Source of the DNA: Caecitellus pseudoparvulus
Taxonomy: Eukaryota > Protista > Bigyra: Bicosoecida
Reading direction: 5' to 3'
Length of the DNA: 64,000 nucleotides
Assembly (NCBI GenBank): GCA_965644315.1
Contig: CBFFRQ010000017.1
Span: 143,860-207,859 of the forward strand
The translations under genes were made by a program, and so were the position numbers. The notes below the pieces were generated by a model, which was not told the DNA's origin, made no database searches, and worked only from the letters and a program-made list of their open reading frames with translations. Shown here in pieces: positions 11,860 to 33,400 of this stretch; position 1 is the stretch's first letter; the number at the start of each line of letters is the position of its first letter.

Positions 11860-13577
11860 ATGTCAGCTCGCAAGCGCCCTGCTGAGAGCTCTGTCGCCGC
11901 TGCCGCAGCAGCCGCAGGCGCCAGTGAGAAGCGGGCTCGCCCACTCGTGGACGACTCTGACAAACACACGTACCAGAGCGGCTTTGGCAATGAGTTTGCC
12001 ACGGAAGCTTTGAAGGGTGCGCTGCCGGTGGGGCAGAACAGTCCCCAAGTTGTGCGTGGCCAAGGGAGTGCCGCGGCCTGGACCACACGCAGCATGCCAC
12101 GCGCGCCTCTTTCCCCGCTCAGTGCCCATACGGGCTGTACGCCGAACAGCTGTCTGGGACGGCTTTCACGGCCCCTCGCAAGGAGAACCAGCGCAGGTGC
12201 GTGACGCCTCAGCCTGCAATGTGCACCTCATTCCACCATCAGTGGGGCGGCTAGTGCACTGCACCTGTCCTGCCTGCCGCAGTTGGCTGTACCGTGTGAG
12301 GCCCAGCGTCATGCACGCGCCGTTCAAGCCGGACGGGCGCTGTGCCCTGTGGAAGTCGGACTTTAGCGCCGAGACTGCCGACCCGAACCAGGTGAGTTCG
12401 GCCGTGCCAGGGCGAAGGCGTGTCGGGCGGTGACGCTGGCGTGATGTGGAGCTGCATCAGCCTGTCCACCCGCTCCCCTGCACAGATGCGCTGGCAGCCA
12501 TCTCCAGCGCCCGCGAAGCCCACCACCTTCCTGGAAGGCATCGTGACCATGAGCGGCGCTGGAGACCCCTGCTCCAAGACTGGCATGGGTGTCCACGTGT
12601 ACTCCTGCAACACCAGCATGGAGCGCACTGCCTTCTACAACTCAGACGGCGACATGCTCATCGTGCCGCAGGAGGGCGCGCTGGAGGTGCGCACTGAGCT
12701 GGGCCCGCTGCGCGTGGCACCCCAGGAAATCGTCGTCATCCCTCGCGGCGTCCGCTTCGCCGTGAGCGTGGAGGGCCCCTCTCGCGGCTACATCTGTGAG
12801 CTGTTCCAGGGACACTTCGCCCTGCCGAACCTGGGCCCCATCGGTGCCAACGGCCTGGCCAACGCGCGGGACTTCTTGTACCCCACAGCTGCGTATGTGG
12901 ACGAGGACGAGGAGTGGGAGGTGCTGAACCGGTACGGCGGCGCCATGCACAGCACGGTGATGAAGCACTGCCCCTTCAACGTGGTGGCGTGGCACGGAAA
13001 CTACGCCCCCTTCAAGTACGACCTGGGTCGCTTCAACACCATGAACAGCGTCACGTTCGACCACCCCGACCCCAGCATCTACACCGTGCTGACTGCGCCC
13101 ACCGACACGCCGGGCGTGGCTGTGTGTGACTTCGTCATCTTCCCACACCGGTGGATGGTCATGAACCACTCCTTCCGCCCGCCCTACTTCCACCGCAACT
13201 GCATGTCTGAGTACATGGGCATGATCAGCGGCAAGTACGACGCCAAGGTGGGCTTCGTCCCAGGCGGCTCCTCCCTGCACTCGTGCATGACACCCCACGG
13301 ACCTGACGCGCCCACCTTCCTCAAGGCCAGCTCAGAACACCTGCAGCCGCAGTGGTTCGACAAGGGCCTTGCGTTCATGTTCGAGAGCACGTATATGCTG
13401 AAGCTGACGCAGCACGCCCTCACCTGCTCTGAGCTGGACAAGGATTACTTCAAGTGCTGGCAGCAGCTGCCCAAGATCTTCGACCCGGCGACACCTCACG
13501 TGACTGTGCCGGAGTCTGCGGCAGCAAAGGCAGTGGCAGCTGCCGCAGCTGAGGCAGGGGCGGCAGCGAAGAAGTGA
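11860..13577 (+). CDS. HGD: Homogentisate 1,2-dioxygenase
   Basis: [61 protein letters not shown]; introns 12052-12122, 12197-12282, 12392-12485. Confidence 0.97.
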
Positions 13578-14819: not shown

Positions 14820-15179
14820 GATTGGGTTTCAAGCCGGGGCGGCGCTGACGCAGGCAGCAAGGCAAAGCGTGGCCATCTTCGCCGCCACCCTGTGTGCAAC
14901 ACTCTCTGCAGCGTCCCTGGCGCCAGTTGTCTCGCATTCACGCTGTGCGAGGCGGCGCTTGCTGGACCAAGCCGCGTTCGCGGGCCGAAGCCTTTTCTTC
15001 AAAATTCACGCACTGCCTGAACATTGGCCACGTTTGCGCAAACCTGCTCCTTGCCACGTGCCCCGTGGCCCGAGCCCACTGTCAAGCAAGCATCCTTGCG
15101 TGGAGTGTTTCTGCGCCACTGCCAGACACTGCCCCTCCCCCTGCGCTCCGGCCTGCCACCTGCACAAGCCACCAGGACA

Positions 15180-15614
15180 ATGCCTTGCTACAAACTCATT
15201 GTCTGGTCTCGGCCAGAGGCAACTCCAGCAGAGCTGGCCAAGACCTTCCGCGGCTTGGCCAAGCTCGTGTACCGAGAGCAGGGCCAATTCCGCACGCTTG
15301 CCAACAAAGGCGTGCGGCCCTTGGCCTGGCCCATTCGCAAGCCCTATGAGAAGTTCGACGAGGCACGACTGGTCGAATGCTCTTTCGATGTCTCCCCCTC
15401 TGGCAAAGAGCAGCTGGAGGGCTTCCTCACCAGCGCCGAGGAAGTGCTGGCGTTCACGCACTTGAGGGATGACGGGCCACTGGCAAGCTTCAAGCGCGGC
15501 ACAAGGAAGGTCCGCACCAAGCCTGTCACTGCACAGATGTTGAGCCAGGGTGTCCTGTTTGACCCTGAGACCATGAAGCCGACACTGACGTCGCTGCATG
15601 CAAACCAAAGGTGA
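15180..15614 (+). CDS. MRPS6: Mitochondrial ribosomal protein bS6m
   Basis: MPCYKLIVW..G.FRTL.NKGVRPLAWPIRK..FDVSP matches the S6 family pattern. Confidence 0.8.
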   Translation: MPCYKLIVWSRPEATPAELAKTFRGLAKLVYREQGQFRTLANKGVRPLAWPIRKPYEKFDEARLVECSFDVSPSGKEQLEGFLTSAEEVLAFTHLRDDGPLASFKRGTRKVRTKPVTAQMLSQGVLFDPETMKPTLTSLHANQR

Positions 15615-16141
15615 CCGCACGCCTCCATACCTGCCTTTGCTTCGGGGGCTTGTTAGAAAGTTTGAAGCTCGCTGCGCAAGGAGCATGTACGGCGCTGCCT
15701 CGCTCCAGATCTGTGCTGCATTGCCGGTGTCGTCGTGTCCCAGGCTTGACTCTGCTGCCGCTTCACCAAGCAGGGGGGAGTTCCACTCCCGCAAGTGCTC
15801 GCCCGAGGGCGCAGCAAACTTGTTGCTCGCGTGCAACTCGACCACCCAATGCATGGTCCACACTCGGCGCTCCAGTGTGTGCTGTGTCGCAGAACACTCC
15901 CCTGCACGGACGTGGGAGGGGGGCTCAGCGCTGCTGAGGCTTGCAACGCCAGTCGGCGCTCCTCGGCATAAACCACGCGTCACTCAAAGCGAAGCACTGA
16001 AACGGCCCAACCCCATTTCATAACTCGTATCAAAGTCACTCTTTTCTGTTTGCCAGGGGTTGTTCCCCCGTCGGTTGCCCGCCTGAGAAACAGCGGCAGC
16101 ACGCGTTGCCACCACGCCGACGAGCGCAAAGCCCCTCCACC

Positions 16142-18864
16142 ATGGCATCACAAGGTTTGTCGCCGCTGCTGACTCGCCCTGATCCACACGTGCCCCCCTC
16201 AATCGCTGCTTACGTCTCGCTTCGCAGGGGTACGCTTGTCCGGGTGGGCGTTGCCACAACGCGAAATTTTGTGTCACGTGCGTTTCTCCGCTCCTTGTGC
16301 AGAGCACTTTCCCTACGCTGGAGCTGGCCGTCGCCGAGAAGGAGGAGCCCCGCAAGAATGGCCAGGCAGTGACAACCCAAAATGTTCGCCAGGTGGACGC
16401 GAACAGTGTCACGGTGGCCCTGGGAAGCGGCGCACCGTTCCGCAAGGTGACCTACAAGCTCACACAGGCGTCGTTCTCGGTGTTTGGCAGCAGTGAAACA
16501 GTCGTTCAACACAGTGACTGTCTGGACTTGACCAAGGATGAAAGCCTGGAGTACACCTTCCACGAGTTGACGCCGTCCAGCCAGTACACCGTGACTGCTG
16601 AGCTCACTCAGCCGACCTCTGCCACGACAGAGGAGGTCCGCCGCCTGCAGGCCACCTTCACCACCCTCTCAGACAGCGAAGGCCTTGCGCTGCGGGCGGA
16701 GCGGGCTGAGGGCAGGCTGGCCGCACACGAGGCTTCGAAGCAAAGCGGTGCCGCCTCGGCGACAGCGCTGCGCGCTGCTCTGGACCAGGAGATGAACCTG
16801 CGTGCCGGGGTGGAGGAGCAGCTAGTCGCACAGCGCAAGGCTGCGTCCTCCGCAGCCTCAGAGCTGCAGCGGTCTCAGAAGCACATGGAGATCATGAAGG
16901 CGGAGGCCAGCACGTTTCGCCGCACGGTGGAGGAGTTGGAGGGCGCGCGAGCGGACATGCTGTCAGGCGTGGCGGAGGTGTGCGACACAGACCCCCGCCC
17001 AGACCTGCCCACCGCGCTGCAAGACCTGACTGAGACTGTGCAGCTGCTGCGTGCAGAGTTGGACGACAAGGAGGCTGTGGTGCAGGACCTCACCCGCCAG
17101 CTGGAGGAAGCCAAGGACAGCATGGCTGCCACGCGCGAGGCATCAGCTCAGCGGCAGGAGGATGCTGCAGCTGCTGTGGCTGGCCTGGAAGAGAAGCTGC
17201 AGGCGGCGCAGTCCGAGTGCACAGAAGTGCGCACAGCGCTGCAAGAACAGGTGCAGGAACTTCAAGGCTCCTTGGCAGAGAGCAAGCGTGAGCTGGAGGC
17301 GCAGACTGCGAAGCTGGCAGAGGCGAAGGCGGAGTTGGCCAGCTACGAGCAGCGCCAGCAGCAGGTCACATCTGAGCTGTCAGACATGCAGCAGCTGCTG
17401 AAGGAGGCCAAGGAGGAGGCCAGCAAGCACCTGGTGCGGGCGGAGAGCAGCGAGGCTGAAGCCGTGCACGCGGCTGCTGTTGCGGAGAGGGTGGAGGGCC
17501 TGCAAGCCCGCATCGCTGAGCTGACAGCGGAGCGGGATGCAGCGCAGGCCGCCCAAGCCGAGGCAGCTGACAGCGCCAAGAAGGACGCGGCTGAAGCAGC
17601 CGCCGCTGCGTCTGGGCGCATCGAGGAGTTGCTGGCTGCAGTGGAGGCTGCTGACCAAGCCAGGGCTGGGTGCGACAAGCGCGTGACGTTCCTGGAGGGC
17701 CAGCTGCACGCCCTGAGCAAGGAGGGGCGAGACGTCCTGCGCAGCCTGCGGTCCATGGCTGTCAGCGTGGGCATCACGAGCCCTGTCCCCGTCACTGTGA
17801 ACACTGGCGTGCTCCCTGCAGTGGCCGCCCGCGTTGAGGCTGCCCTGGCAGAGCTCTGCGCGTCCATGGAGGCAGAGGAGGTGGACCTGGGCGGGCAAGT
17901 GCCCGGCACGCCAGCCTCCCCCGTGCGCACGTCCTCCGCAGACTCCGGTGTCAGGCTGAAGGAGTGCATCCAGGCGGCCCAGGCAGCCATGCGGCGCAAC
18001 GCCGCCGGGCTGGCGGCGGCACAGGAGAAGCTGGCGGCCAGCGAGGCTTCCCAGCGGGAGCTGCGTGCCGAGATCGCCGAGCTGCGGGAGGCTGTCGTGA
18101 CCAAGGAGGCACAGCTTGTCAGCGCGGCCAAGGCTCGTGTGGAGCAGGAGCACGCCGCGGCTGACGTGGACGCTTTGCGCAGCGAGGTGGCTGCTGCCAA
18201 GCAGGAGGCCGAAGACATCCTGCGCGCCAAGAAGAGGCTGGAGCGCGAGCAGGGCACGGCGGTCCTGCACAACGCCGAGCTGGAGGAGCAGCTGCGGTCC
18301 ACGCAGGAGGAGGTCATGGCGGTGAACAAGGCCAACGCTGACCTCCGCGGCGAAGTCGCAGCCTTGCGCCTGCACCAGTCACCGGGGCACGCGGGTGCCG
18401 AGGGGTCAGTGCGCGAGAGCTCGGAGGTGGCGGTGCTGCGGGCCCAGCTGAAACAGGCAGAGGAGGAGGCGAGTGGCATTGCCCAGCAGCTGGCTGCTGC
18501 AGAGCTGGAGCTGAACACGTGCACGGCTAACTTGGCCAGCCAGAAGTCCCAGCTGCAGTCCAAGGATTCCGTCATCGCGGAGCTGCAAGAGCAAGTGCGG
18601 GTCATGTCGGCAGAGGTGGAGGCCCATCGCGCCAGCCTGGAGAGCGAGGCAGAGAAGGCGGCAGCCGAGCACCGCTTGGACAAGGACGTCATCCTCAAGG
18701 TGGCCAACGTCACGTGCAGCCCCATTGCGCAGGCTGTCAAGGCCCTGCTGGGCACGCGCGGCGACGCCAGCGCGGCGGTCATGGACTTGCTGGGCAGCAC
18801 ACACGTCGCCACGCCTGCTGCGTCGGCTGTCCCAGTGCAAGGCGGCGGCCGGGGCGGGCATTGA
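16142..18864 (+). CDS. Fibronectin-III-like domain plus long coiled-coil protein; model includes a 2-nt micro-exon
   Basis: YTFHELTPSSQYTVTA FN3 signature then heptads. Exons 16142-16154, 16228-16229, 16303-18864 give MASQGSTFPTLEL... Confidence 0.8.
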
Positions 18865-18925
18865 AATGCATTGCTGGGCTCTCAACGCTCGACACAGACA
18901 TTCTCAAAGCTCTTCGTGTGCGCCG

Positions 18926-19621
18926 TCACCTGGCGAACTCCTTGGCGCCCTTGTACGACTGCTCGGTGCCGCGGTCAACGCCAGCCCAAGTCTTCTGCAC
19001 GCTGTCCTCGCCAAACACGTGCCTGTTGGTGGTGTCCAGGGCGTGCCACCAGTCTCCCCGGGCCTCCTTGCTCTTCGTCCACTCAGCAGCTTTGTCCTCG
19101 TCAGCGTAGAGCTCTGTGGATCGCTTGGACGCGTTCACCCTGCGAAGCGCCGGGTGTGCCAGCGTGATGCCCTGCCCAGCTGATTGGCGCATCTGCGCGG
19201 CATCACGCACTTGACTGTGGGCTCCCACATCAGCATCTGGCTGCCCCTCCAGGTGGCAAAGGTGACTGCGAGGAAGGGACAAAGGCTTGCGTGCTGGCGT
19301 TGCTGGCAGCTCGACGGCGAGGCACTTGCCAGGCTGGCTCGGCCAGCTGATGCCCGGCGTGGTGGCCAGCCGCATCACTCACCAACGCCACCGACGAGCA
19401 GGACCAGGGGGGTTGCCTGCGCAGCAAGGCAAAGAGGATGTGAAATTAAGCATAGGTATCTGTTTTTCATACCCAGGAAGGCTGCAGGTGCGCTTCTGGG
19501 CTTCTGGACAGCACTGCGTGGCCAGTGCCCAAGCCAGCGTTTCGCGGCGCACATCACTCACCTCCCACACGCTGGCAAACGCGCGCTTTGTGTTAGAGCC
19601 GGCGTTAATGACGCGAACCAT
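18926..19621 (-). CDS. NDUFA4/B12D-like small mitochondrial membrane protein
   Basis: Spliced (introns 19561-19417, 19382-19266, 19210-19140): MVRVINAGSNTKRAFASVWEATPLVLLVGGVVTFATWRGSQMLMWEPTVKVNASKR..., single TM then P-x-V-x-V-x3-R as in B12D. Confidence 0.7.
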
Positions 19622-20322
19622 GATTAATCTGCAGAAAGGCAGGGGTTTGTCTCGTGGCGGGCTGAGTGGAGCCGCGATAGGGCGCCCGTGCGGTGCAGCG
19701 TGTGATGCCAGCTTGATGTGGTTTGAGCAATGGTGCTCAGGACGCACAGTTTAGGTGAGGGGTGTTGCAGGGAGTCGGGACAAGTCTGTGATGACTTTAA
19801 AACTTGTTTATGAAGTACTTGCTTGGGATTAGGGTGGTGAGTGCGGCTTGGTTGATTTGGCACGGGCCGGGCAATTGGGAGGTGGTCTAGAACCCCCCTT
19901 CGAAGGCGATTGCCCCCCCCCCCTGGCGCTGGAGAGGGCCAGTGCGCACTACAAGGAGCGGCAGCAATGCAGGAAGGTGTCTTTCAGGCTACTGTATTCT
20001 GTTCCCTGCGAGGGGAGCAGCAGCATGAAGCTGTGACGTCGCGGCCGTTGTGACTTGTGCCCCATTCGCCGTTGCAAGGGCGCCACAACCCGCGCATGTG
20101 CTCGAGGTACGTTCTTTTACTTCTCCCTGCCACATCAAAACCCTTCCAGATACTGCTCACTGACCGTTCTGTACGCCTCTGTCTTTCCCACCCGCCATCC
20201 GCGCCACCACATCCAACTGCAGGGGCGCGTTTCGCCACCCCTCCTGCGCAAGCTGCCAACGGGCTTCCCGTCGGCTCGTGTGGGCTTCCTTCTTGGCAGG
20301 AGACCCCCCCCTGCTTCGCAGC

Positions 20323-21058
20323 ATGGCAGCAGCGAGTACAGGGCGCGCGTTTGCCCAGCAGCTGTTGGCAAAGCAGTACAAAGGTGCGTGCGCATGCACG
20401 CTGTTTGGGCTGGCGTTTCAGTTGTTGCAGCGCAGGGCGTCCACGCTGCTGCAGAGCTGACGACGAACCCTCCTGAGGGAATCCACGTGGGATTGAAGGA
20501 CGAGGACCTGTTCCACTGGACTGTCATGGTCATCGGCCCCCCTGGGACTTACTAGTGCGTGTCCTGCGTCATGGCCTGCCAAGTACGGACGGGGCTGGTG
20601 CATGGCTGGGCACCGTCACACCCCGCCACCCGGCTCCCGCAGCAACGAGGGCATGTTCAGGTGCGAGCTCACGTTCCCCGACGACTTCCCCAACATGCCT
20701 CCTGCCATGAAGTTCCTGGACGAAGTGTGGCATCCCAACAGTGCGTGTCGCGCGCCGCCTCGCCGCCTCCGCCTTTCCCACGCGAGCCCCGCCCACTGCA
20801 GTCTACCCGGACGGCAAGGTGTGCATTTCCATCCTGCACCCCCCTGGCGTGGACGAGATGAACGCCCAGGAAACGGCGGAGGAGAGGTGGCGCCCCATTC
20901 TTGGCGTGGAGGCGGTGCTCATCTCCGTCATCAGCATGCTGGCCGACCCCAACATCGAGTCGCCAGCCAACATCGACGCCGCAACGCAGTTCAGAGATGA
21001 CAAGAAGGGCTTCCGGCGCAAGGTCAGGCGGTGTGTGGCCAAGACTCTGGAGGAGTGA
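20323..21058 (+). CDS. Ubiquitin-conjugating enzyme E2, UBE2G/Ubc7 (or Cdc34) class
   Basis: [20 protein letters not shown] plus acidic insertion loop, ERWRP, SPANIDAA; introns 20384-20454, 20555-20642, 20741-20801. Confidence 0.93.
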
Positions 21059-21431: not shown

Positions 21432-24400
21432 ATGGACACTGTGTACGGCTTCGTTGACCGCATGTTCCAGGCCATGGACTTGCGGAACCCTTTGATGAAG
21501 GGTGTGCTGTACTATCTCCAGTCTAACCCCATCATCAGCAGGTACTTGGACCTGTCCAGGGCAACGCCAGACCTGGCACTGGACCGCGGCGAGGAGGCAG
21601 GGGAGATGCGCATTCGCAACATCACCCTGCGCGCGGAAGCCCTGGAGCAGTTCAAGCTGCCCATCACTCTGTTGGACAGCCATGTCGGCAGCCTGGACGT
21701 CCGCCTGCCCGACTCGTACTTCGGCACCTTCACAGACCTGCTGCTGGGCGGTGAAGGGGAGGCGCTAAAAACTGCCCTCGTGCTGAACGGCATCAACATC
21801 ACCATCGCCCCCCGGGACAACCTGGAGGGTGCTGTGGCGCGCGGTGCTGGCGAGAAAGCATCCGAAGCCAGCGGCCTCACGCCCTCCCAGCGTGTGGACG
21901 CGCTCATGTCAGCGGCCCAGGTGGACAAGCTGCGCCGGCTGGGGCTGGACAAGGACTCAGAAGACGAAGAGCTGACCATCAGGGCCGTGGCCGTGCTCAC
22001 TCAGCGCATGACCATCCGTGTGCACCAAGTGCACATTCGCTACGTGGACACGGTCACACGCCCCGAAGCGCCGTTCGCTCTGGGCATCGTCATGCAGGAA
22101 GCACAGGGGGGGCCGCTGCTGGACGTGGTGCGGGCTGCTGCCAAGGCTGGCGACGCGGCAGCAGCGGCGGTGCAAGCTGCGTCACCTGCCCACCCGGGTG
22201 ATGCCGCATGCCAGGCTTTTTTGGACTCACCAGAGTGGATGGCGGCCATGCAGCCCCCGCAGGTAGGGCTGGCTGACCGCCTGCGCACGTCGCAGCGCAA
22301 ACTGGCCACCTTGCAGGGCCTGGGCGTGTACCTTCAGCAGCTGCCTTCGCAAGGTGCGCCCACGGGCCCAAGTGGCGGCCCTGTGGAGGAGGACCCGCTG
22401 CCTCCAGAGTTTTCCTTCGTCAACGCCGCACTTGAGGACACCCCCGTTCGGCAGCGGGATTGGGTTCTGCATCCGCTCTCTGCCCGTGCGGCGTACACGG
22501 TGCAGGCTGGCCAGCTGTTTTCCAGGCACTGCCCCCCCGCGCAAAGGGCGGTCGTACACATCCCTCGGCTGGCACTGTCCATGTCAGAGGCGCAGCTGCA
22601 CAGTGCCTGCGTTGTGGCGGCGTACTTGCGAAATTACCGCCTCCACAGCAAGTACTCCGACTGCTGGGAGTCTGCGCAGCAAGTTGCAGCGGCAATGGGC
22701 ATCCACCGGGCGACTTTTTTCCCGCTCGCTGCGCTGTGGGAGCACGCCAAAGGCCGCCCTGAGGCGTCCTTGCACCGTGCGAAGTTGTACCACGCGAGTG
22801 TCAGCCAAGTGTTTGCCCGCTTTCTGCCACAGGAGGTGGTCAGGGTTGCCAGTCTCCGGCATAGTGCCCGTGGCACCGCAAGGACCACCCTCGCAGCACT
22901 GGTGCCTGCCCCACTCCCCGCCGCGCCAACTGCGGGTCACCTGCACGACTGGGCAGAGCACATGCGCGCCTTTCTCGAGGCGGCTGAGCAAGGCGGCGGG
23001 CGCCAGGAAGGAGCTGTCAGTCTGGGCAGCTCTTCTGCTGCGGCAGCAGGCGCCGCGTCGGGGGTCGGAACGCCAAGTACTCCAGCGTCAGGCCAAGCGT
23101 TTCCGTCAGAGACATCTGCTTCACCAAGTCGCTTGCTCCGAAGGCAGGCCTCCACAAAGATGCTGGATGAGGCGCTTCAAATGGACTTGGCGAAGTGCAC
23201 AGCACCACCAGATGTCTTCGCCACGTGCATGGAGGCATTCAGAGCCAGGGTGCGGCGAAGTCTCCTGGCGAGGCAGCGGTGGGCGTTTGCTCAGCGGGCA
23301 GTTGTGGGGGATTTGCGGCGGCAGGGCCAGCGCGTGCGCAGCAAGCTGGCTTCCAGACTGCGACGGCAGGGGCGAGGAGCTGCCTCTGGCGTGTCGGGCA
23401 CCCATGAGTCTGCGCGCTTTCACACCCTGCAGGCTGTGACGCTGGGGCCGTCGGGACTCCGACTGAGCATGGTGGAGGCGCTGTGGGGACCACAGTACGT
23501 GGCCGCCTTCAAGTTGCTCTTCCGGCGCAAGCTTGGGCAGGGCGGCATGCTCATCGATGGCGTGGTGCTCCCCAGCTTCAGCATCATTGAAGTCGCCCGG
23601 CCGCAGCCTGGTGAAGCGCATGTGAAGGGGACCTCCCCATTCATCACGACTCCGTTGCCGGGCGAGCCAGCAGAGCTGCCCTTGTCATTCCGCCTCGAAG
23701 CAGGGCAGCTTGTTGCATGCCATCGGAGCGCTGGGCAGCAGGGCATCCCCATTTCCGTGAATGCGTCCCCCACTGCATTTGATGGCGAGCTGTTGGTGAC
23801 TTGGGTGGAGGACGTGCCTGCGAAGACCCTGCCGCCACACAAGGACAAGGATCTGAAGTGGCAGCCATCCACATCGTCGCAACTTGCACGGAGCAAAGCA
23901 GAAGACACGATCAACTTCCTCGACAGACATCTGTCGGCGGAGAACCTCCTGCGGTACCGCCGGGTCGCCCACGCAGAGTTGCAGCTGGAGAACTTCTTGC
24001 TCAAGTTCCGCGAGCACCAGCGCCAGGAACTTCGAAGGGTTGCTGGGCAGCAGAGCGCCTGCTTTCCATCGCTCTCATGTGCGGGATCCCCACGCGCAGC
24101 CGAGCCAGGGGAAGCAAGCGCGAGCGTGGACAGTGCCGTCAGCAGAGAGCGCCTCACGCGACTCGTAGCAGTTCCAGTTTACACGGGAGAAGCTATTCGC
24201 GCCTTGCAGCGCAGCCAAGACACTCTGAATCGATTGCAAAGTTCTTCATCGGAGCCAAAGTCGGAGGAACGGGACAGGCAAGCCGCCATTGACGACACTC
24301 TCCGCCGCATGCACGAGGCGGAGCTGTCCGAGCCCAGGTCCCCGGCGCAGCTGCACCCCCTTTCACTGTACACCCACCAACTGCACACCCCATCTCTGGA

Positions 24401-27400
24401 TGGCGAAGCTTTCCTTCAAGCTGTCAGCCAGCAGCGCGACGGCGACTGCTTTGCAGAGACGCTGGCCGCGTTGCTCCCGGGCGGTTCTGGCACCCCGCAA
24501 GTTCCCGGGCCGGCTCAACGTGCCCTGCTGCGCGCCGCGCTTCGTCGAGCGCAGATCCCGCTGGGCTTTGCGCTGACACTTCCTCAACCTGGACTGCAAC
24601 CCGCTCCACCAGCGTATGGATTCATCTCGTCTCTCTTTCTCACACAGCGCCCGGTCCTGTGGGCCTCAGCTGCGTCTGCTCAGCTGCCGCTTCCCGCACC
24701 CTGCAGCACTTCATCGCAAGACAGCGAAAAGCGTGGAACCGTCATTCTGCGCATTCAAGCCAGGGACGCAACGGAAGAACAGCTGCACACGGCTCGACAG
24801 GTCCCTGTCGCAAGTAACACCTGGTCGGGCCTTGCGCCAGGCGGGGCTTGTGTGGGCTTGGCTTCTGAGTCCTCAGGCCTGCTCACGTGGATGTCCGAAG
24901 CAGTCCTGGCACATGAAGCTTGGTGTGAGGAGCCAGTTCTTCGCTCTCGCTTGGCGCGCTGCATTGTGTGCCCCACACAGGGGCTGAATAGTGCCCACGC
25001 TTCGCTGCACACGACTGGGACTGCCGAGGTGCAGCACATCTCATTCGGTCGTTTTCGTGAGCCCCCGATGGCACCAAGTGTCCCAGCGCACCTGGATCAC
25101 GTCGGGCACCTCCCGTCTGAGCACCTCTTTGCGTATGCGTCCCTTCTCACGGAACAGGACAAACAAGGGCTTGCGACTCTGCTGCCCCTCACCAGCCTCG
25201 ATGACCCAGCGCTTCTCGACGTTGACGACAAGACGTTGCCTTGGAGCTACGTCCTGCGCCACGCACATGTACGCTGTACAGAGGCATCCGTGTCCCTGTC
25301 CCTTTCCTCTCGAGCCGGCCCGAGCGGCGGTGTTGCGGGCGGCGCCATGCCAACCTGGCGACAGGCACAGGCCGCCCCGTTTCTTGCAGCGAGGTTGCTG
25401 GACGCCAAGCTCCTGGTGCAGCAACTTAAGGCACAGCACTTGCGAGGAAAGGTGTCGGTAGCAAGCATCGAGGTCGAGCAGGATGCGTCAGGACTCCGCA
25501 TGCGGCACGAACGGCCTGTCTGGGATGCGCTTCAGACTGCGGTAGAGCAGGATGGCGGGTCCTTTGCGTCGGCGGTGGGGCGCATTAAGTCCACAACTGC
25601 TGCACTGGGGCCCTCCAGCCCTACCGAGCAGTTGCTGGCAACCTTGTTTGCGATCGTGGACCCCCCCGAGGCATCTGCAGTCCACAGCCGCCCTCCTTGG
25701 CTGTTGCCGCGTGACACCTGCCAGCCCTGCCACAACCCACCTCCTTCACCCTGGGAGGGCACCTCTTCACTGCTGAGTTGGCTGTGTGCTTACATTCGCT
25801 TCTTGCTCAAGCCACCTTGCGGCGAAGCCCCCGCCTTGACGCCTGCTGTCTTGCTTACGTTGTGGATGAGTGCCCATTCCACTGCTCTGCCTAGTGCAGC
25901 ATTACCACGAACTGTCCTTGCGTTGGAGGAAGCTTGCCAAGTTGAACCACCTACGCTGTTCCAACACGCCCCGCCCACGATAAGGGGCTCCCGGCCCGAC
26001 TCCCCCTTTGCGCTATTTCTCCACAAGCGGGTGTTACAGCGCCTGCTCACCGGCACGCCACCCGCGCAGGATCTCCGGGAGCTGCAAGTGGGGGAGTTGT
26101 CACGTGCGCACCAAGTGGCTGCCTGGATGCGGGAAACCGTGCAGCACGCTCACAAGGAGGCAATCGCAGATTTTTTCTCCGGGTGCCCATCGTTTGATGC
26201 GATTCTCCTGGACGATGAGTTCGTTCAGTACCTATTTGCGTACGCGAGCAGCGTTGCGGAGCACGAGGAGGAAGCCCACGACGTGGTCCCGCCCCAAGCC
26301 CTAGCTCCGGCGCTGCGGTTTTGGAGGGATTTGATGCTGCTTGAGCGGGGTTTGAAAGTCCATGCGAACGCGCAGCTACAACCGGTGTGTGCCCTGCTTA
26401 CTTCCCACCAGGAGACGGTTCAGTACGTGAAGGCTCTCTTCGCGGGGTACGTGGGTGGCACGGCAGTGAGCCAGACCACCCAAGCACATCAGCCGGTCAC
26501 GCAGCCTGCAAAGCCTTCCTGGTCCACGTGGCTGTGGGGGACTGGAGTCGCCGCTCCACGTCTTTCCAGTGCGCAAGGCCCCATGTCCACGGGCCACCTC
26601 ACGCCACTGGCAGCCTGGCTTGGCAAGTCGGAGGATGGTGAGAGTGCCTTGAGGTCCCTCAGCGATCACCTGTGGGGTTCTGCCGATGAGGTCCGGGCGA
26701 CGACTTCATCTGGTCCCAGCGCCCTCCTAGGGCACCAGCTTGTGTCAGAATGGTGTCGGCCGCTGCACAACTTGCTGCGTCGGCTGTTGGATGTCCACTT
26801 GCTCCCGCGGTTCGTCGCCGACACCTGGCATCCAGAGCATGGCTGTTTCCGGCAGCTGGAGGCAGCCATTGCGCCGGGCGCACTCCTGCAAGGGGTAGCC
26901 CGTGCAAAAGCAGGCAAGCTGGCGACGGCTTGTGGGGCACTGAACAGCCTGCATGCTCGCCAACGACCTGACATTCTGCCAGGGCTCATGTGGGGCGGAG
27001 CCCGGCTTCGCGTTCAAGACGACGGCGGCTGGAAAGACGCCGCCCAGTTTTTGTCCCTCTCTGTCTCAGGGATGGCAAGCGACCCAATTCCTGCAGTCAA
27101 TCTGCACTTTGAGCACTGCAAGACTGGAGTTCCGGCCGAGCAGTACTCTGGACTGTCCAGCCCGCGCACGCCTGCCCAGGAGAGTGACATGCAGCGGCAC
27201 GAGCTGGAAATTTTACAGGAGCAGTTGACTGAGCTGCCTCGCATTGAACCTTTAACATCTGAGTTCGGCTTGGGGCGGGTGCTTGTGGAGGGTGCTGCTG
27301 CGATGTTAGCGTGGGAATCACAGGAGGGCGCGGCGTCCGGGGTGGTGGCTGCAGAAGCACCCTCTTCAACGACAGTGTTCTGCCACATAGATGCAGAGGG

Positions 27401-30400
27401 AACAGCACTCAGTATTCGGCATCGCCCAGATGATGATGCTCCGTTTAAGAGCCTTCCGCTTCACCACCACTGCCGAGTACTCTTGCCAGCCGAGGTGCCA
27501 GTTGGAGCGGAACAAGCTGCCGTAGGCGGGGGCCCTGCATCCCCAGCATTCGCCGCAATTTTGGCATGGGTCACAGCCTTTGGGCAGCGGGGGGGCTTCA
27601 AAAGTGTTCCCGATGGATTTTTGACACGTGGACTGCTTTTCCTGTCTGTGCCCATGCACGGAGCCCCTCGCAGCTCGGACGTGCAGTGCCAGGTGCTGCA
27701 GCTTCCGTCGGAAAGCAGCAGAGATGCATTCCACTTGGCAGCAAAGCACAGCATTTTATCTCACCTCGTGCAGCACGCTCGGGCAGAGGCGCTCAGTCTC
27801 TCGCGTGGCGATGTAGGCCATGACCTCCTCCAGCAGCTGCAGCCGTCGCTGTGCGCCTTTGAAGGCGAGACAAAGTCACACCTAGCATCGTGCTTCAATG
27901 AGGATTTGCCAAGTGTGCAAGGCGAGCTGTCACCTAGTGCTCTAGACCATGGTAAGGTGCAAGTTCCTTCTCGCAGCTTGCTGCACACATCGGCCGACAC
28001 CCTGGAGCTGGCGCTGTCGCCTGCAGAGGTGCCGGGCCTGCCTTCCACCGCACGGCTCAACCTTGCAGGGGCCCTGCCCTGTGCAGAATGTCCACCAAAA
28101 CAGGGTTTTCAAACCGCGCATTTATCAGTGGGCCTCATTCACATTTGCTTGCACCCCGCAGCGGCGGGTTCGCTGCTGTCGGAGTTTTTGCATGCAAGGC
28201 CATACTTGGCAGCCGCCTACGTTGGACACTTGTCCCTTCTGCCGCCAAGCTCTAGGCAGTCCGATGTTGCGCTGGCCAGTAGCATCCAGGCGATGAAGCA
28301 GACCAGGTCACTCCGCCGAGAGTACCGTAAGCGGGTCTTGGATTGTGCGATGCGATCGTGTGTGCCTCAGGGTGTGGGGCAGATGCACGACCGCGCTGCC
28401 GTCAAACGTGACTTGCTCAGGCAAAACTACCGCCGCGCAGACAATTTCATTCCAGAGCAAGAGGGTCATGAAGTCCATCACGCGGCCTCCCTTGAAGAGG
28501 GAGTGAGCGATGCTCGTGTGTCTGTTTGGGTGGCCGGACTGGAGTTGGCCCTGCCGGCCACCGCGGCTCGAGTGCCTCGTGGTGCCCCGGGTACAAGCCG
28601 CGAAGTTGACTTGGACTGCACTGTCGTTCAGTCCGAGGTGAGTCCAAGGCCGGGCTGGGTTCATTCCCTCCCCGCCCTGGACGTGGTCATGCTGCGCATG
28701 AGTGGTGTGCAGGCTGGGACATTCACGGGCGCCCATGTGGGTGCTCAGATTCAACGAGTTGACGTGTCCCTGGTCACCTTGATGGATGCTGCTTGTGCAA
28801 GTGCAGGTCGACTTGGAAGCGTGGCTCAGGGGGCGCCCAACCTTGATCGCTGGGCGCCGGTCATGAGAGCCGTGTCAAGCTGCGCTCTCCGTGCCTGCTT
28901 GCTGCAGGACACACCCCTGCTCTCGCTTCGGAAAGGGGCAGGAGTTCAGCTGTATGGGGTGGATGAAAGCCAGGTCATCCTTGGGTCCATCGACGTGTTT
29001 GCCGTCCCAGCCTGCGCTCCGGAGCTGCTCGGTATTCGTGCTGCCTGGCAACACCTTCACCACATTTGGGTGGAGGTGGAGGCTGCATCCCAGCAACTCC
29101 AGCTGCGCAGTGGGAACACAACTCATTCAGGCGCGTCAGGGGAGTCAATGCCACCCGAGCCCCATGGGCAGAGTCCGTGGAGGCTGTCCGTGACACTGGA
29201 TGCATGCCACTTGCACCTGCTTGCGCGGGGAGCAGGACCTGGCTGCCAAGCAGCCTCTGGTGAGGGCTTGACGGCGGAATGCGCTTCTTCTTTGATATGT
29301 TGCACTCCTGAGTGTGCTTGCTTGTTCACGCTTGGCTTGCTGGGTTCGCGAGCGCTGGTGGAGTTGCCAAGCCTAGCGGCACCGCAGCACCCCATGAGCC
29401 TGTCTGGCATGGCGAAGGCCCTCAACCACGTGCACCCACCAGGGTTCTCGCCACGAAAGGCTTCTTCGACAGCGCTTCTGTCACGCATGGAAGTGGGCGG
29501 CTTGGTGGGTGTGTGTTTTCCAGGGCTGCTCTCAGGCTCAGGGGCTGAGGCGTTGCACAGGCAAGCCACTCCCCAGAAAGACATGCCGTATGCCCCGTGG
29601 GATTCAGATATGAAGAGCGTAGCGTGCATGTCCCACGAAAACAACTCTCCGCACCTTGTCGTCCAGTGTGGCAGCGGTAAGCGGCGGGCGGGGAAAGCTG
29701 CCTTGCTCACTCTGCAGCAGACCACCTCCAGTGCGTCGGCAGAAGGGCAGTGTGCCACATGCTGCACCACGCAAGTGGGACCAGTGGCACAGCACCACCA
29801 GCCTCATCACGGCCGAGCAGCAACGTGGGCTGCGAGCAAAGCGGCTGCCTCTGCGCTGGCAGCGCTGGACGAGGACTCGCCAACCCCTGACACGCCCGTC
29901 GATTCCGTACACCCAACTGAGGATGTCAGTGTGCACTTGCGTGCCTTCAGCACAGACCTCCCTCAGCATGACGTTCGCAGGGGGGTTTCCATCGACATTA
30001 ATCACGTTCACGTGCTCCCCTCTGCCATGCTTGTGCAGGGCATGTCGACCCTTGTGGGGAGTCTGCAAGGCTGCATCCGCGCGCAAGCAGCCCAGCGCGG
30101 CGAGGACGGCGCCCGGGAGCTTAGCTTTGTTCGCGCCTGGTGCACAGCGCTCATGCGAATGTCATCAGAAGAAAAGCGCACCGAGGATGAGGCACTTGGG
30201 TCGCGACGTTCGCGTCAAGGTGCCACTTGTGCCCTGCCGCTCCAAGTGGTCACTGAGCTGCTAGTGGTGTCTGGCTCGGTCGCTGGTGTGCATGGGCGCC
30301 TGACACACGACTGTGCCATGTTGGCAGGGATTTCATGTGGCCAGCTGTCTTTTCGGGCAAGCAAAGGCAGTGTTGTGGAGGACATTGTCTGTGTCCCTCT

Positions 30401-33400
30401 GTCAGGGCCGGTGTTTGAATCCGAGCAAGCCCAGGCGACGGTGCAGCGAGAGCTCCTGAGATTATTCGACGGAAAGGGCAGTATACAAGTGCACCATACG
30501 TCAAGACGATCAGGTGCATGGCGGTGTGTGGGGGCAATCGATGGGGACTTGAGTATCACCCTTTGCCGACCCGAGCTGTTCATGCTGGCGTGGACGTTTT
30601 CCGACGGAGACACACGTGACCCGTTGAGGCGAGGCGGACAGTGGCTGCCGCACATGATACCTTTCTCTGCATACTGCCACCCCCTGCTCGCGGCCCGGTT
30701 CTCCAGAGAGTGCGCTTCAAGACCATCTGATGCTGTCTGGAGCAAAGCGATGCTGCCCGCCGTTTCCACTGCGTTGCGTGGGCAGAGTGCTGTTGGCCTG
30801 CGCCCCGTCCACCCCGCGCGAGGCTGGGCTGCCATGCCGCACCCCCTTCTTGTCCCAACTGACACTGAGTCAGCGGACCCTTCGCACTGGTGGAGTGGCG
30901 TTCCTGGTGGAGTCGTGCAATTGAAGGTCGGTGACATCTTGCTCAGCGCGTCGCATGCTTCTCCGGAGTCAATCTCAGATGGGCTGCCCGCCCCCAGGGA
31001 GCCCCTTCACCATGCCTGGCAAGATATCAATGCGGCCCTCACGGAGCGGGCATTCTCCTTGGAGCCTGAGCTGCCCCTGCTGTTGACTGATGTGGAGGCT
31101 GTGTGCGGGCGGGTGTCCGTGGATGTCGAGCAGGATATCAGCGTCTTGCCATGGGACGTACTCAGCGCAGTGTACGCCAGCGATGGATACGGCTTGGGAA
31201 GCAGCCGTGCTGGTGACAGGGCAACCGGCTGGATGTGGATTCGAGGCTTTAGCTCTCACATGGAACACGTGGCTCCCGTGCTCGCGGTCACTGACGGCGC
31301 CGATGTGGAGGCGGTCATGGGACCTCAGCTGCACCCTCATGCAGGGTTTGGCGGCCGGCGACACGCTGTGAAAGTCACATCTCTTGTCGTGCAGCCCATC
31401 CCAGTGAGTGCGGAGAGTGACGAGGCGTCCGCCACGCAGCAGAGTCCAGCACAGGCGTCCACAACGGTGCAGGCGCTGCACATGCACACAACTGCAGATG
31501 CGCTGGCTGTACGGCAGGTCATGCACGTAGGCAAGCTAGTCCCTCGGGTGCTCGCGCAGCTATCACAACAGATGTGTTCCACTGGCCCCTGCCCCGACTT
31601 TGTATCGTGGGTTCGGGGGGATGCGAGGCAGCTGGACAGTGTCGCAGCACGATTGGATGCGTTGACCCACGAGAGTGGGCGGGACCGTTCAGCCTCGGAC
31701 ACCTCAATTGGGGAACGTGATCATTCTGGCGGGGGGGACTCTGACGCATTCACACAAATCGGCACGCAGCCAGGCTCTGACAGCCTCTGGGGCGCCGCTG
31801 CGGGGTCGGAGGCAAGCCCGACAGCCTCCCTGCAAGGTTCAGTAGCTGAGCCTGAGACAGGCAAGGGTGGAGCTCCACTGGAATCCCTGGAAGCAGAGAC
31901 GTTCGTGACACTACAAGCTGAAACTCTCTTGGTAGATGTGCAGTGCCTCGCCTCGGGCGTGCAGCGGTTCTGGGGAGCGCCGCCTCCTTTGCCGGTGATG
32001 CGTGTTGCGCACGACATTCACAGGAGCGTCGCTGCAGGACGACCAGATTTGAAGGGCGACCAATCACCATATTTTCAAGACGCGCTGGACATCTGGCCTT
32101 GCCTTGAAGACAATTACAGGTGGTGTGCAAGGGCCGACTGTTCGCGGCTGGCCTGGCTGCACGACTTTGCGCGAGGTGTCGTGGCACCCCACACGCAAGT
32201 TATCATGTACAACGCCAGCGCTGGCTGTAAACTTAACCCGCTTCGACACCAGGATGTGTGGAAGACGTCCCGTGAAGCCCAGCGGGGTTCGGTGAGCATG
32301 ATGGAGTGCGAGCTGGGCACTGCAGCCATGTTCGTGGGCCTCGTCGCGCCCAGCCCCTTGTTGCAGCCTGTCTTGGGGCTCGTGCCCGAGCACGAAGCGT
32401 TCACGCATTTGCATGCACAACGTGACAACACAGCTCACCTGTGGCCACAGGAGCCAGCCTGGAGGCATGGCGTCCCGCGAGCCGCAGTTGGCGGTGCTGT
32501 CGGCGCGTTGCATGAAGCAGCCGCTGGCAGATGGGGGGATGCAGTTGGTACACCGTGCCCGCCAGGCATGAGCCCCACAAGGTACATTGTGTACCCCCAT
32601 TGGTGGAGGCCGGGCAGCGCCTTGCCCACGCATGTGTACTCGCTGAACAGCCCACATTGGTGGGCCAGGGCCCTGTCCAAACACGCGGGGGCTTCTGCGT
32701 GGGGAAGGGAGGTGCTGCAGGCGCTGACTGATGGCGATGTGCACACCCTTGACAGCTTCCAGCAACAGCGTGAAGAAGCTGGTGACACTTGGCAGCCACC
32801 TCGCAGCGTGGCCGCCACAGCCGAACTTGCTTGGGCTGGGCACACTGCGCACCGCAGCACGGCGAGCCTCCTGCGCGGTTCCTTGCAGCAGCAGCTTCAC
32901 ACCCTCGCCACTGGGCACCAACTCCATGTTCACAGCAGCACTGGCAGTGGCATGTGGAGCCCAACACCCAACCTTGGTGGTGAGGCGGAGCTGCTGGACA
33001 CCGGCATGGACAGCGAGGAAGTGCAGGTGGGGGAAACATTTTTTGCGCTGCAGGTGCCCGTCGTGACGAGCTCCCCCTTCCAAGTGAGTATGCCGCGCGA
33101 AGGTGGGCAGCCTCATCACCTGGCAGGTGTCAGTCCTTTGGCACAGCTTGCTGTTCAAGCTGTGCGGCGCGAGCAGACCCGTCAGTTTTTCTTGTACATG
33201 GCGCCCCGTCTGGAGAACTGTCTGCAAGTTACGGCGATCGTCCCAATGGATCCCTGGAAGTCGGACGTGTCTGAGCCTACTTCATCTTCTCTGCCTCCCA
33301 CCCTATCACGTGAAAGCGCCGAGTGGATTCAGAGCTGGCTGCAGCAGTGCGAGAGTCGGCTTGGGCCGTGTGGTGCATACGGCCCGCTGTGGGTGTGGGG

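Follow-up and report, generated by a model that had tools for sequence, protein, structure and literature searches.

Background

The closest described counterparts of the locus analysed here are internal coding exons of one to three nucleotides (nt). In Coprinopsis cinerea, 13 internal exons of 1 nt and 57 of 2 nt (the latter in 50 genes, as annotated) have been reported, and the omission of its 1-3 nt exons, which annotation misses, often leads to a premature stop; the number of annotated 2-nt exons in this one fungal genome does not agree with the rarity that an earlier note on the present locus had implied (PMC12230235). The Arabidopsis APC11 and plant VPS55 genes each carry a 1-nt exon, for which one-after-another removal of the flanking introns has been proposed (PMC4674806, PMC8831610). 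The 1-nt exon of Fusarium CYP621A was hidden as AG-G-GT within an apparent intron of 139 nt, where the median is 56 nt, and was confirmed in SRA reads (PMC12940212).

Here we describe an exon of two bases, GG, in a protein-coding gene of a marine protist, located in a window (the whole stretch of DNA that was analysed) of 64,000 nt. The exon lies between an AG and a GT and is no longer than 3 nt, it is present in mature mRNA, its flanking introns are canonical and of normal length, and its omission breaks the reading frame. It belongs to the known class of 1-3 nt coding micro-exons (the APC11, VPS55, CYP621A and Coprinopsis type) and represents no new mechanism.

The resemblances to the individual members of this class differ in kind. 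Like Coprinopsis cinerea, the protist has a compact genome and an internal exon of 1-3 nt, but the former is a fungus surveyed genome-wide with long reads, whereas our data concern one case in a marine protist, seen in short-read contigs, with no sign of a large class (PMC12230235). With APC11 and VPS55 the GG exon shares a length below 3 nt, a position near the N-terminus between GT-AG introns, a requirement for the frame, and an explanation by intron definition with one-after-another removal; unlike ours, which lies in an orphan gene, the plant exons are 1 nt long, are conserved throughout land plants and have been examined with RT-PCR or reporters (PMC4674806, PMC8831610). In common with CYP621A, the clue was an apparent intron of double length and the exon supplies part of a Gly codon, but the Fusarium base belongs to a P450 motif that is conserved in 20 orthologues, and the Gly encoded here is the fifth residue of an N-terminus that is not conserved (PMC12940212). 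No reports of such exons in stramenopile-type or marine protists were found in a limited literature search, and the present case adds a marine protist lineage to those with transcript-confirmed exons shorter than 3 nt.

Three further classes were considered and rejected. At ratchet points no bases are left (AG/GT), and the introns concerned are very long; the locus described here has two short introns and keeps two bases in its mRNA, which excludes a zero-length exon. A fungal stwintron is an inner intron that interrupts a splice signal of an outer intron, whereas each of the two introns described here has its own intact donor and acceptor and a nested arrangement does not fit, the nested case being judged from the sequence. 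Regulated animal microexons of the SRRM3/4 type are mostly frame-preserving cassettes of 3-27 nt with a skipped isoform; ours is 2 nt long and frame-shifting, and no skipped form was seen among the transcript contigs. What the locus does share with recursive splicing and RS-exons is that a longer stretch would be removed in two steps via an internal acceptor-donor pair (PMC6224609).

Locus and gene structure

The source assembly is eukaryotic, comprises 30.6 Mb in 215 contigs with about 63% G+C, and contains an 18S gene of 1,697 nt, a short length that may point to a bicosoecid-type stramenopile flagellate; the same genome was also met in seawater samples and in sequencing runs labelled as other organisms. 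The region of the micro-exon gene was single-copy in a search of the genome, and the gene is flanked by the ribosomal protein S6 (rpS6) gene and by a convergent minus-strand gene with several exons. All of the coordinates given in the earlier note proved correct when checked on the sequence. The features of the locus are as follows:

15180-15614, rpS6 gene, identified by Pfam
15985-16141, plus strand, 5' UTR without an ATG; RNA contigs reach 15985 (run X5) and 16003 (run X4), which is a minimum extent, as contigs cannot show the true start
16142-16154, plus strand, coding part of exon 1, specifying M-A-S-Q and the first base of Gly5
16155-16227, plus strand, intron 1, 73 nt, GT-AG, GTTTGT...TTCGCAG
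16209-16213, plus strand, probable branch site of intron 1, here CTTAC with the A at 16212, a function suggested by the general branch consensus
16228-16229, plus strand, the 2-nt exon GG, bases 2-3 of the Gly5 codon, TTCGCAG/GG/GTACGC
16230-16302, plus strand, intron 2, 73 nt, GT-AG, GTACGC...TGTGCAG
16303-18864, plus strand, exon 3, 853 codons and a stop, continuous in RNA contigs
18922-19847, minus strand, highly covered transcript (depth 75 in run X16) with four GT-AG introns of 119 (in the 5' UTR), 145, 117 and 71 nt
20100-21058, ubiquitin-conjugating enzyme (UBC) gene; its introns of 71, 88 and 61 nt are read-supported

The whole cassette, from the start codon to the end of intron 2, thus occupies only 161 nt. 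Both introns are of normal local length, 73 nt each compared with 61, 71, 71, 88, 117, 119 and 145 nt for the read-supported introns of the neighbouring genes. The donor of intron 1 (AAG/GTTTGT) is weaker than the local GTGCGT/GTGAGT type and differs in this from the seven neighbouring read-supported introns, while intron 2 has the donor GG/GTACGC, a pyrimidine-rich acceptor and a possible branch site, GTCAC, near 16276. A tandem acceptor, CAG/AG, is present at 16301-16304, and its second AG, two bases past the acceptor that is used, would frameshift the gene; no use of this second AG was seen in the RNA contigs.

In the long open reading frame an in-frame ATG first occurs at 16792; there is an in-frame stop at 16180. 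On the transcript contigs no ATG precedes the start proposed in the earlier note, the one at 16142, whose context is CCACCATGG. Joined with GG, the model encodes 858 amino acids (aa) beginning MASQGSTFPT, and with GG omitted it encodes 68, as the claim that the exon is needed for the frame had anticipated. By frame computation, retention of either intron yields 93 aa and retention of both 76 aa, and all skipped or retained forms meet a stop within 26-93 codons.

Genomic DNA is compatible with other arrangements. The frame from the ATG at 16142 stays open across the whole 161 nt, and donors at 16214, 16238 and 16244 joined to 16302 (introns of 89, 65 and 59 nt) are also in frame; with three such single-intron models available, the micro-exon is unproven by DNA alone and RNA is needed. 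The motif itself is weak evidence, since a YAG-NN-GT is common by chance (7% of this genome's 148-nt stretches; 0.4% for a central YAG-GG-GT), and what is strong evidence is the match of the motif to two extra bases in RNA.

Transcript evidence

The transcript data consisted of assembled contigs rather than raw reads, which drop rare variants and leave minor isoforms invisible. The expected alignments were worked out beforehand: since genome and model mRNA agree as far as 16155 on the left side of the join and again from 16302 on its right side, inclusion of GG should show as a skip of 146 nt with TT..CA ends, and skipping of GG as a skip of 148 nt with GT..AG ends. The joint 16155/16302, with a skip of 146 nt and TT..CA ends, was present in three RNA runs from three studies at depths of 20.2 (X16), 11.5 (X4) and 4.4 (X5), which answered the earlier note's call for a search of RNA for the junction and bore out its 2-nt exon between two 73-nt introns. 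The joint was absent from the DNA run X15, a contig of which spans 15103-19922 without a gap. Run X4 is RNA-seq on record, and X16 and X5 were counted as RNA because the UBC introns are removed normally (GT..AG) in both.

The observed RNA join equals exon 1, GG and exon 3 letter for letter. An exhaustive search for decompositions of the joint, in which as many as three introns could lie side by side and have GT/GC/GA/GG-AG or AT-AC ends, gave a single solution, two 73-nt GT-AG introns around GG. The 2-nt exon is genuine and present in mature mRNA.

The single-intron models, in which a longer first exon would be spliced from 16214, 16238 or 16244 to 16302 and no micro-exon would exist, are in frame and free of stops on DNA, and the donor at 16244 (CGG/GTGGGC, 59-nt intron) is plausible in itself. 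None of the three joints was listed in any of the three RNA runs, however, and bases 16156-16243 are uncovered, so that these models are refuted by the RNA contigs as the main isoform and we regard them as extremely unlikely. The earlier note had called the micro-exon obligatory; this did not follow from DNA alone, where the three in-frame alternatives compete with it.

Removal of a single non-canonical 146-nt TT..CA intron (16156-16301) in one step, with the internal AG-GG-GT a matter of chance, would give the same mRNA and is what an aligner reports. To set against this, the ends of all seven other joints in the same RNA alignment are GT-AG when read on the coding strand, the central YAG-GG-GT that chance would have to provide has a probability of 0.4%, and both halves of the stretch have a pyrimidine tract, a branch-like motif and the local intron length. 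To our knowledge there is no class of TT-CA introns, and the single-step reading has hardly any probability in our estimation.

The mRNA would likewise be letter-identical if a 148-nt GT-AG intron were removed and two untemplated G's inserted by RNA editing, or if the contigs came from an intronless DNA allele or a retrocopy. Against the former, the two bases are templated in the middle of the stretch at a site bounded by AG and GT. Against the latter, the locus is single-copy, both introns are present in all six of the DNA sources, and two of the runs with the joint also show spliced neighbouring genes. We give these explanations only the slightest chance of being correct. With the templated GG exon, the gene model can be corrected at a place where aligners render a false TT-CA intron and gene finders either cut about 165 codons or misplace the first exon.

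Splicing of the cassette

Based on these data, we favour, with a probability of roughly 0.93, a constitutive 2-nt coding exon whose flanking 73-nt introns are intron-defined and are excised consecutively by the ordinary major spliceosome. Since two spliceosomes cannot flank two bases, the two 73-nt introns are probably recognised separately, each across its own length, and removed in succession. Removal of the first intron would leave GG as the edge of an exon of normal size, and the remaining intron would then be an ordinary substrate. The three exon bases before the second donor are GGG both before and after removal of intron 1 (GGG/GTACGC), so the context of this donor is unchanged and the sequence forces no order; either is possible. 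Only the doubly spliced mRNA encodes the 858-aa protein. Neither half-spliced form was seen among the contigs, in which such an intermediate would hardly be expected. The cassette thus provides a small natural substrate, 161 nt in length, for studying the order of splicing around an exon too short for two spliceosomes.

The earlier note had ascribed the exon to strict intron definition. Recognition intron by intron is likely, but its strictness is not upheld, since introns of 117, 119 and 145 nt are spliced out in the adjacent gene and length would therefore not prevent a skip of 148 nt. More probably, this skip would be out-competed by two good short introns.

The earlier note had also suggested an on/off switch. 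In such a regulated system the GG exon would be skipped via the 148-nt GT-AG path, or the weak first intron detained, under conditions outside those sampled, and the protein would be turned off. Every alternative form is frameshifted, the first donor is weak, an intron of 148 nt is within the organism's range as judged from the 145-nt intron next door, and the 1-nt exon of plant VPS55 is used alternatively (PMC8831610). Frameshifting on skipping, however, is a property of any exon whose length is not a multiple of three, and the three independent samples show the included form only: among their contigs, which drop rare forms, there was no 148-nt joint and no intron-retaining contig, and the depth of the bin 16101-16300 corresponds to the contribution of exon 1 alone. 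The switch thus found no support in the three runs and we consider it improbable, though less so than the alternatives discussed above; if real, it would constitute a regulated two-base exon in a protist. Constitutive use of the exon is the reading most consistent with these samples.

Strain variation and origin of the introns

Both introns are kept in five DNA loci of other strains that are about 99% identical. Five intronic sites vary among these loci, whereas exon 1, GG and all splice sites are unchanged; so few sites cannot demonstrate selection. The comparison leaves out L007/P0005, which match only from 16385, and P0002/P0003, which are unrelated sequences. In four of the other-strain loci the motif at 16209-16213 is CTAAC, the usual branch consensus, in place of CTTAC; its distance to the intron 1 acceptor is 15 nt, and the variant fits a working acceptor at 16227.

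With respect to origin, the cores of the two introns are no more alike than shuffled sequences (p 0.84), and a search of the genome gave a single match. As the introns are neither repeated in the genome nor mutually similar, nothing points to a recent duplication or to an introner or other mobile intron.

The encoded protein

The 858-aa product appears to consist of a beta-rich, fibronectin type III (FN3)-like N-terminal domain of about 125 aa followed by about 700 aa of coiled-coil-like sequence, the latter rich in A, E, Q, K, R and L and with sub-threshold matches to coiled-coil families. The match to Pfam fn3 (PF00041) was below the cut-off (E 0.078; 13.6 bits, cut-off 25), the Atlas gave 0.87-0.89 to FN3 clusters, and a fold model from the one sequence had eight beta strands at low confidence (pLDDT 56), with no match to this model in the PDB at E 0.001. 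Judged by sequence composition, the product contains no transmembrane stretch. We would guess that it is a cytoplasmic scaffold or tether. The micro-exon supplies its two bases to Gly5 in the unconserved N-terminus, where there is no known motif.

In searches for an orthologue of the N-terminal domain (a word search, a JGI scan and exhaustive HMMER with the N-terminal 146 aa) only same-species copies were recovered, together with a weak match to a bacterial-type Ig-repeat protein. A walk from the rpS6 neighbour did not find a copy of the gene near rpS6 in related species. In two of these (L030 and L031) rpS6 lies near a UBC gene, and in L030 a homogentisate dioxygenase gene adjoins as it does in the window; no FN3/coiled-coil gene was found near rpS6 in either. 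The gene may be lineage-specific or relocated. Going by these comparisons, the product would be an orphan protein, and conservation of the micro-exon is apparent among strains only.

Frequency in the genome

To place the GG exon in its genomic context, we counted strong acceptors followed at a short distance by a consensus donor. A whole-genome pattern count gave 20 cases with the donor 2 nt later and 29 with the donor 1 nt later, compared with 36 for a control with the reversed-strand donor word and 31 per position at distances of 11-30 nt. When both flanking introns were required, 15 matches were obtained genome-wide compared with 9 in the control (p 0.15). Genome-wide, consensus donors were thus not over-represented at 1 or 2 nt from a strong acceptor, in tests that are crude, restricted to consensus sites and blind to non-consensus donors, and that would miss the GG exon itself; a local scan of 264 kb for the pattern had too little signal. 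From these counts, such exons appear to be occasional in this organism rather than a genome-wide system, and a few dozen cases would be compatible with them. The two most intron-like of the 15 matches, G000:C42:554316-554464 (-) and G000:C68:498067-498208 (-), are candidates only.

Neighbouring genes

The 115-aa product of the minus-strand gene at 18922-19847 we take to resemble NDUFA4/B12D; its single exons gave no Pfam match. The 145-nt intron of this gene (19417-19561, minus strand) holds a CAG followed by 9 nt and GTATGA, and would split into 80 and 56 nt around them. The length of the X16 contig is exactly that of the form without the 9 nt. This element is either skipped in X16 or a chance occurrence, and as a candidate for an optional micro-exon it is better than the GG exon.

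The 5' UTR of the UBC gene has two additional bases, CC, after 20303 in X16, probably a strain difference in a run of C. Within the coding sequence of the homogentisate dioxygenase gene, a 60-nt GTACGC..CAG stretch (12137-12196) abuts the true donor at about 12197 (AG/GT), and the arrangement is most likely a normal exon end and not a zero-length exon. Further downstream in the window, an uninterrupted open reading frame of 4,705 codons occupies 21432-35549, and its N-terminus is, by eye, presumably VPS13-like.
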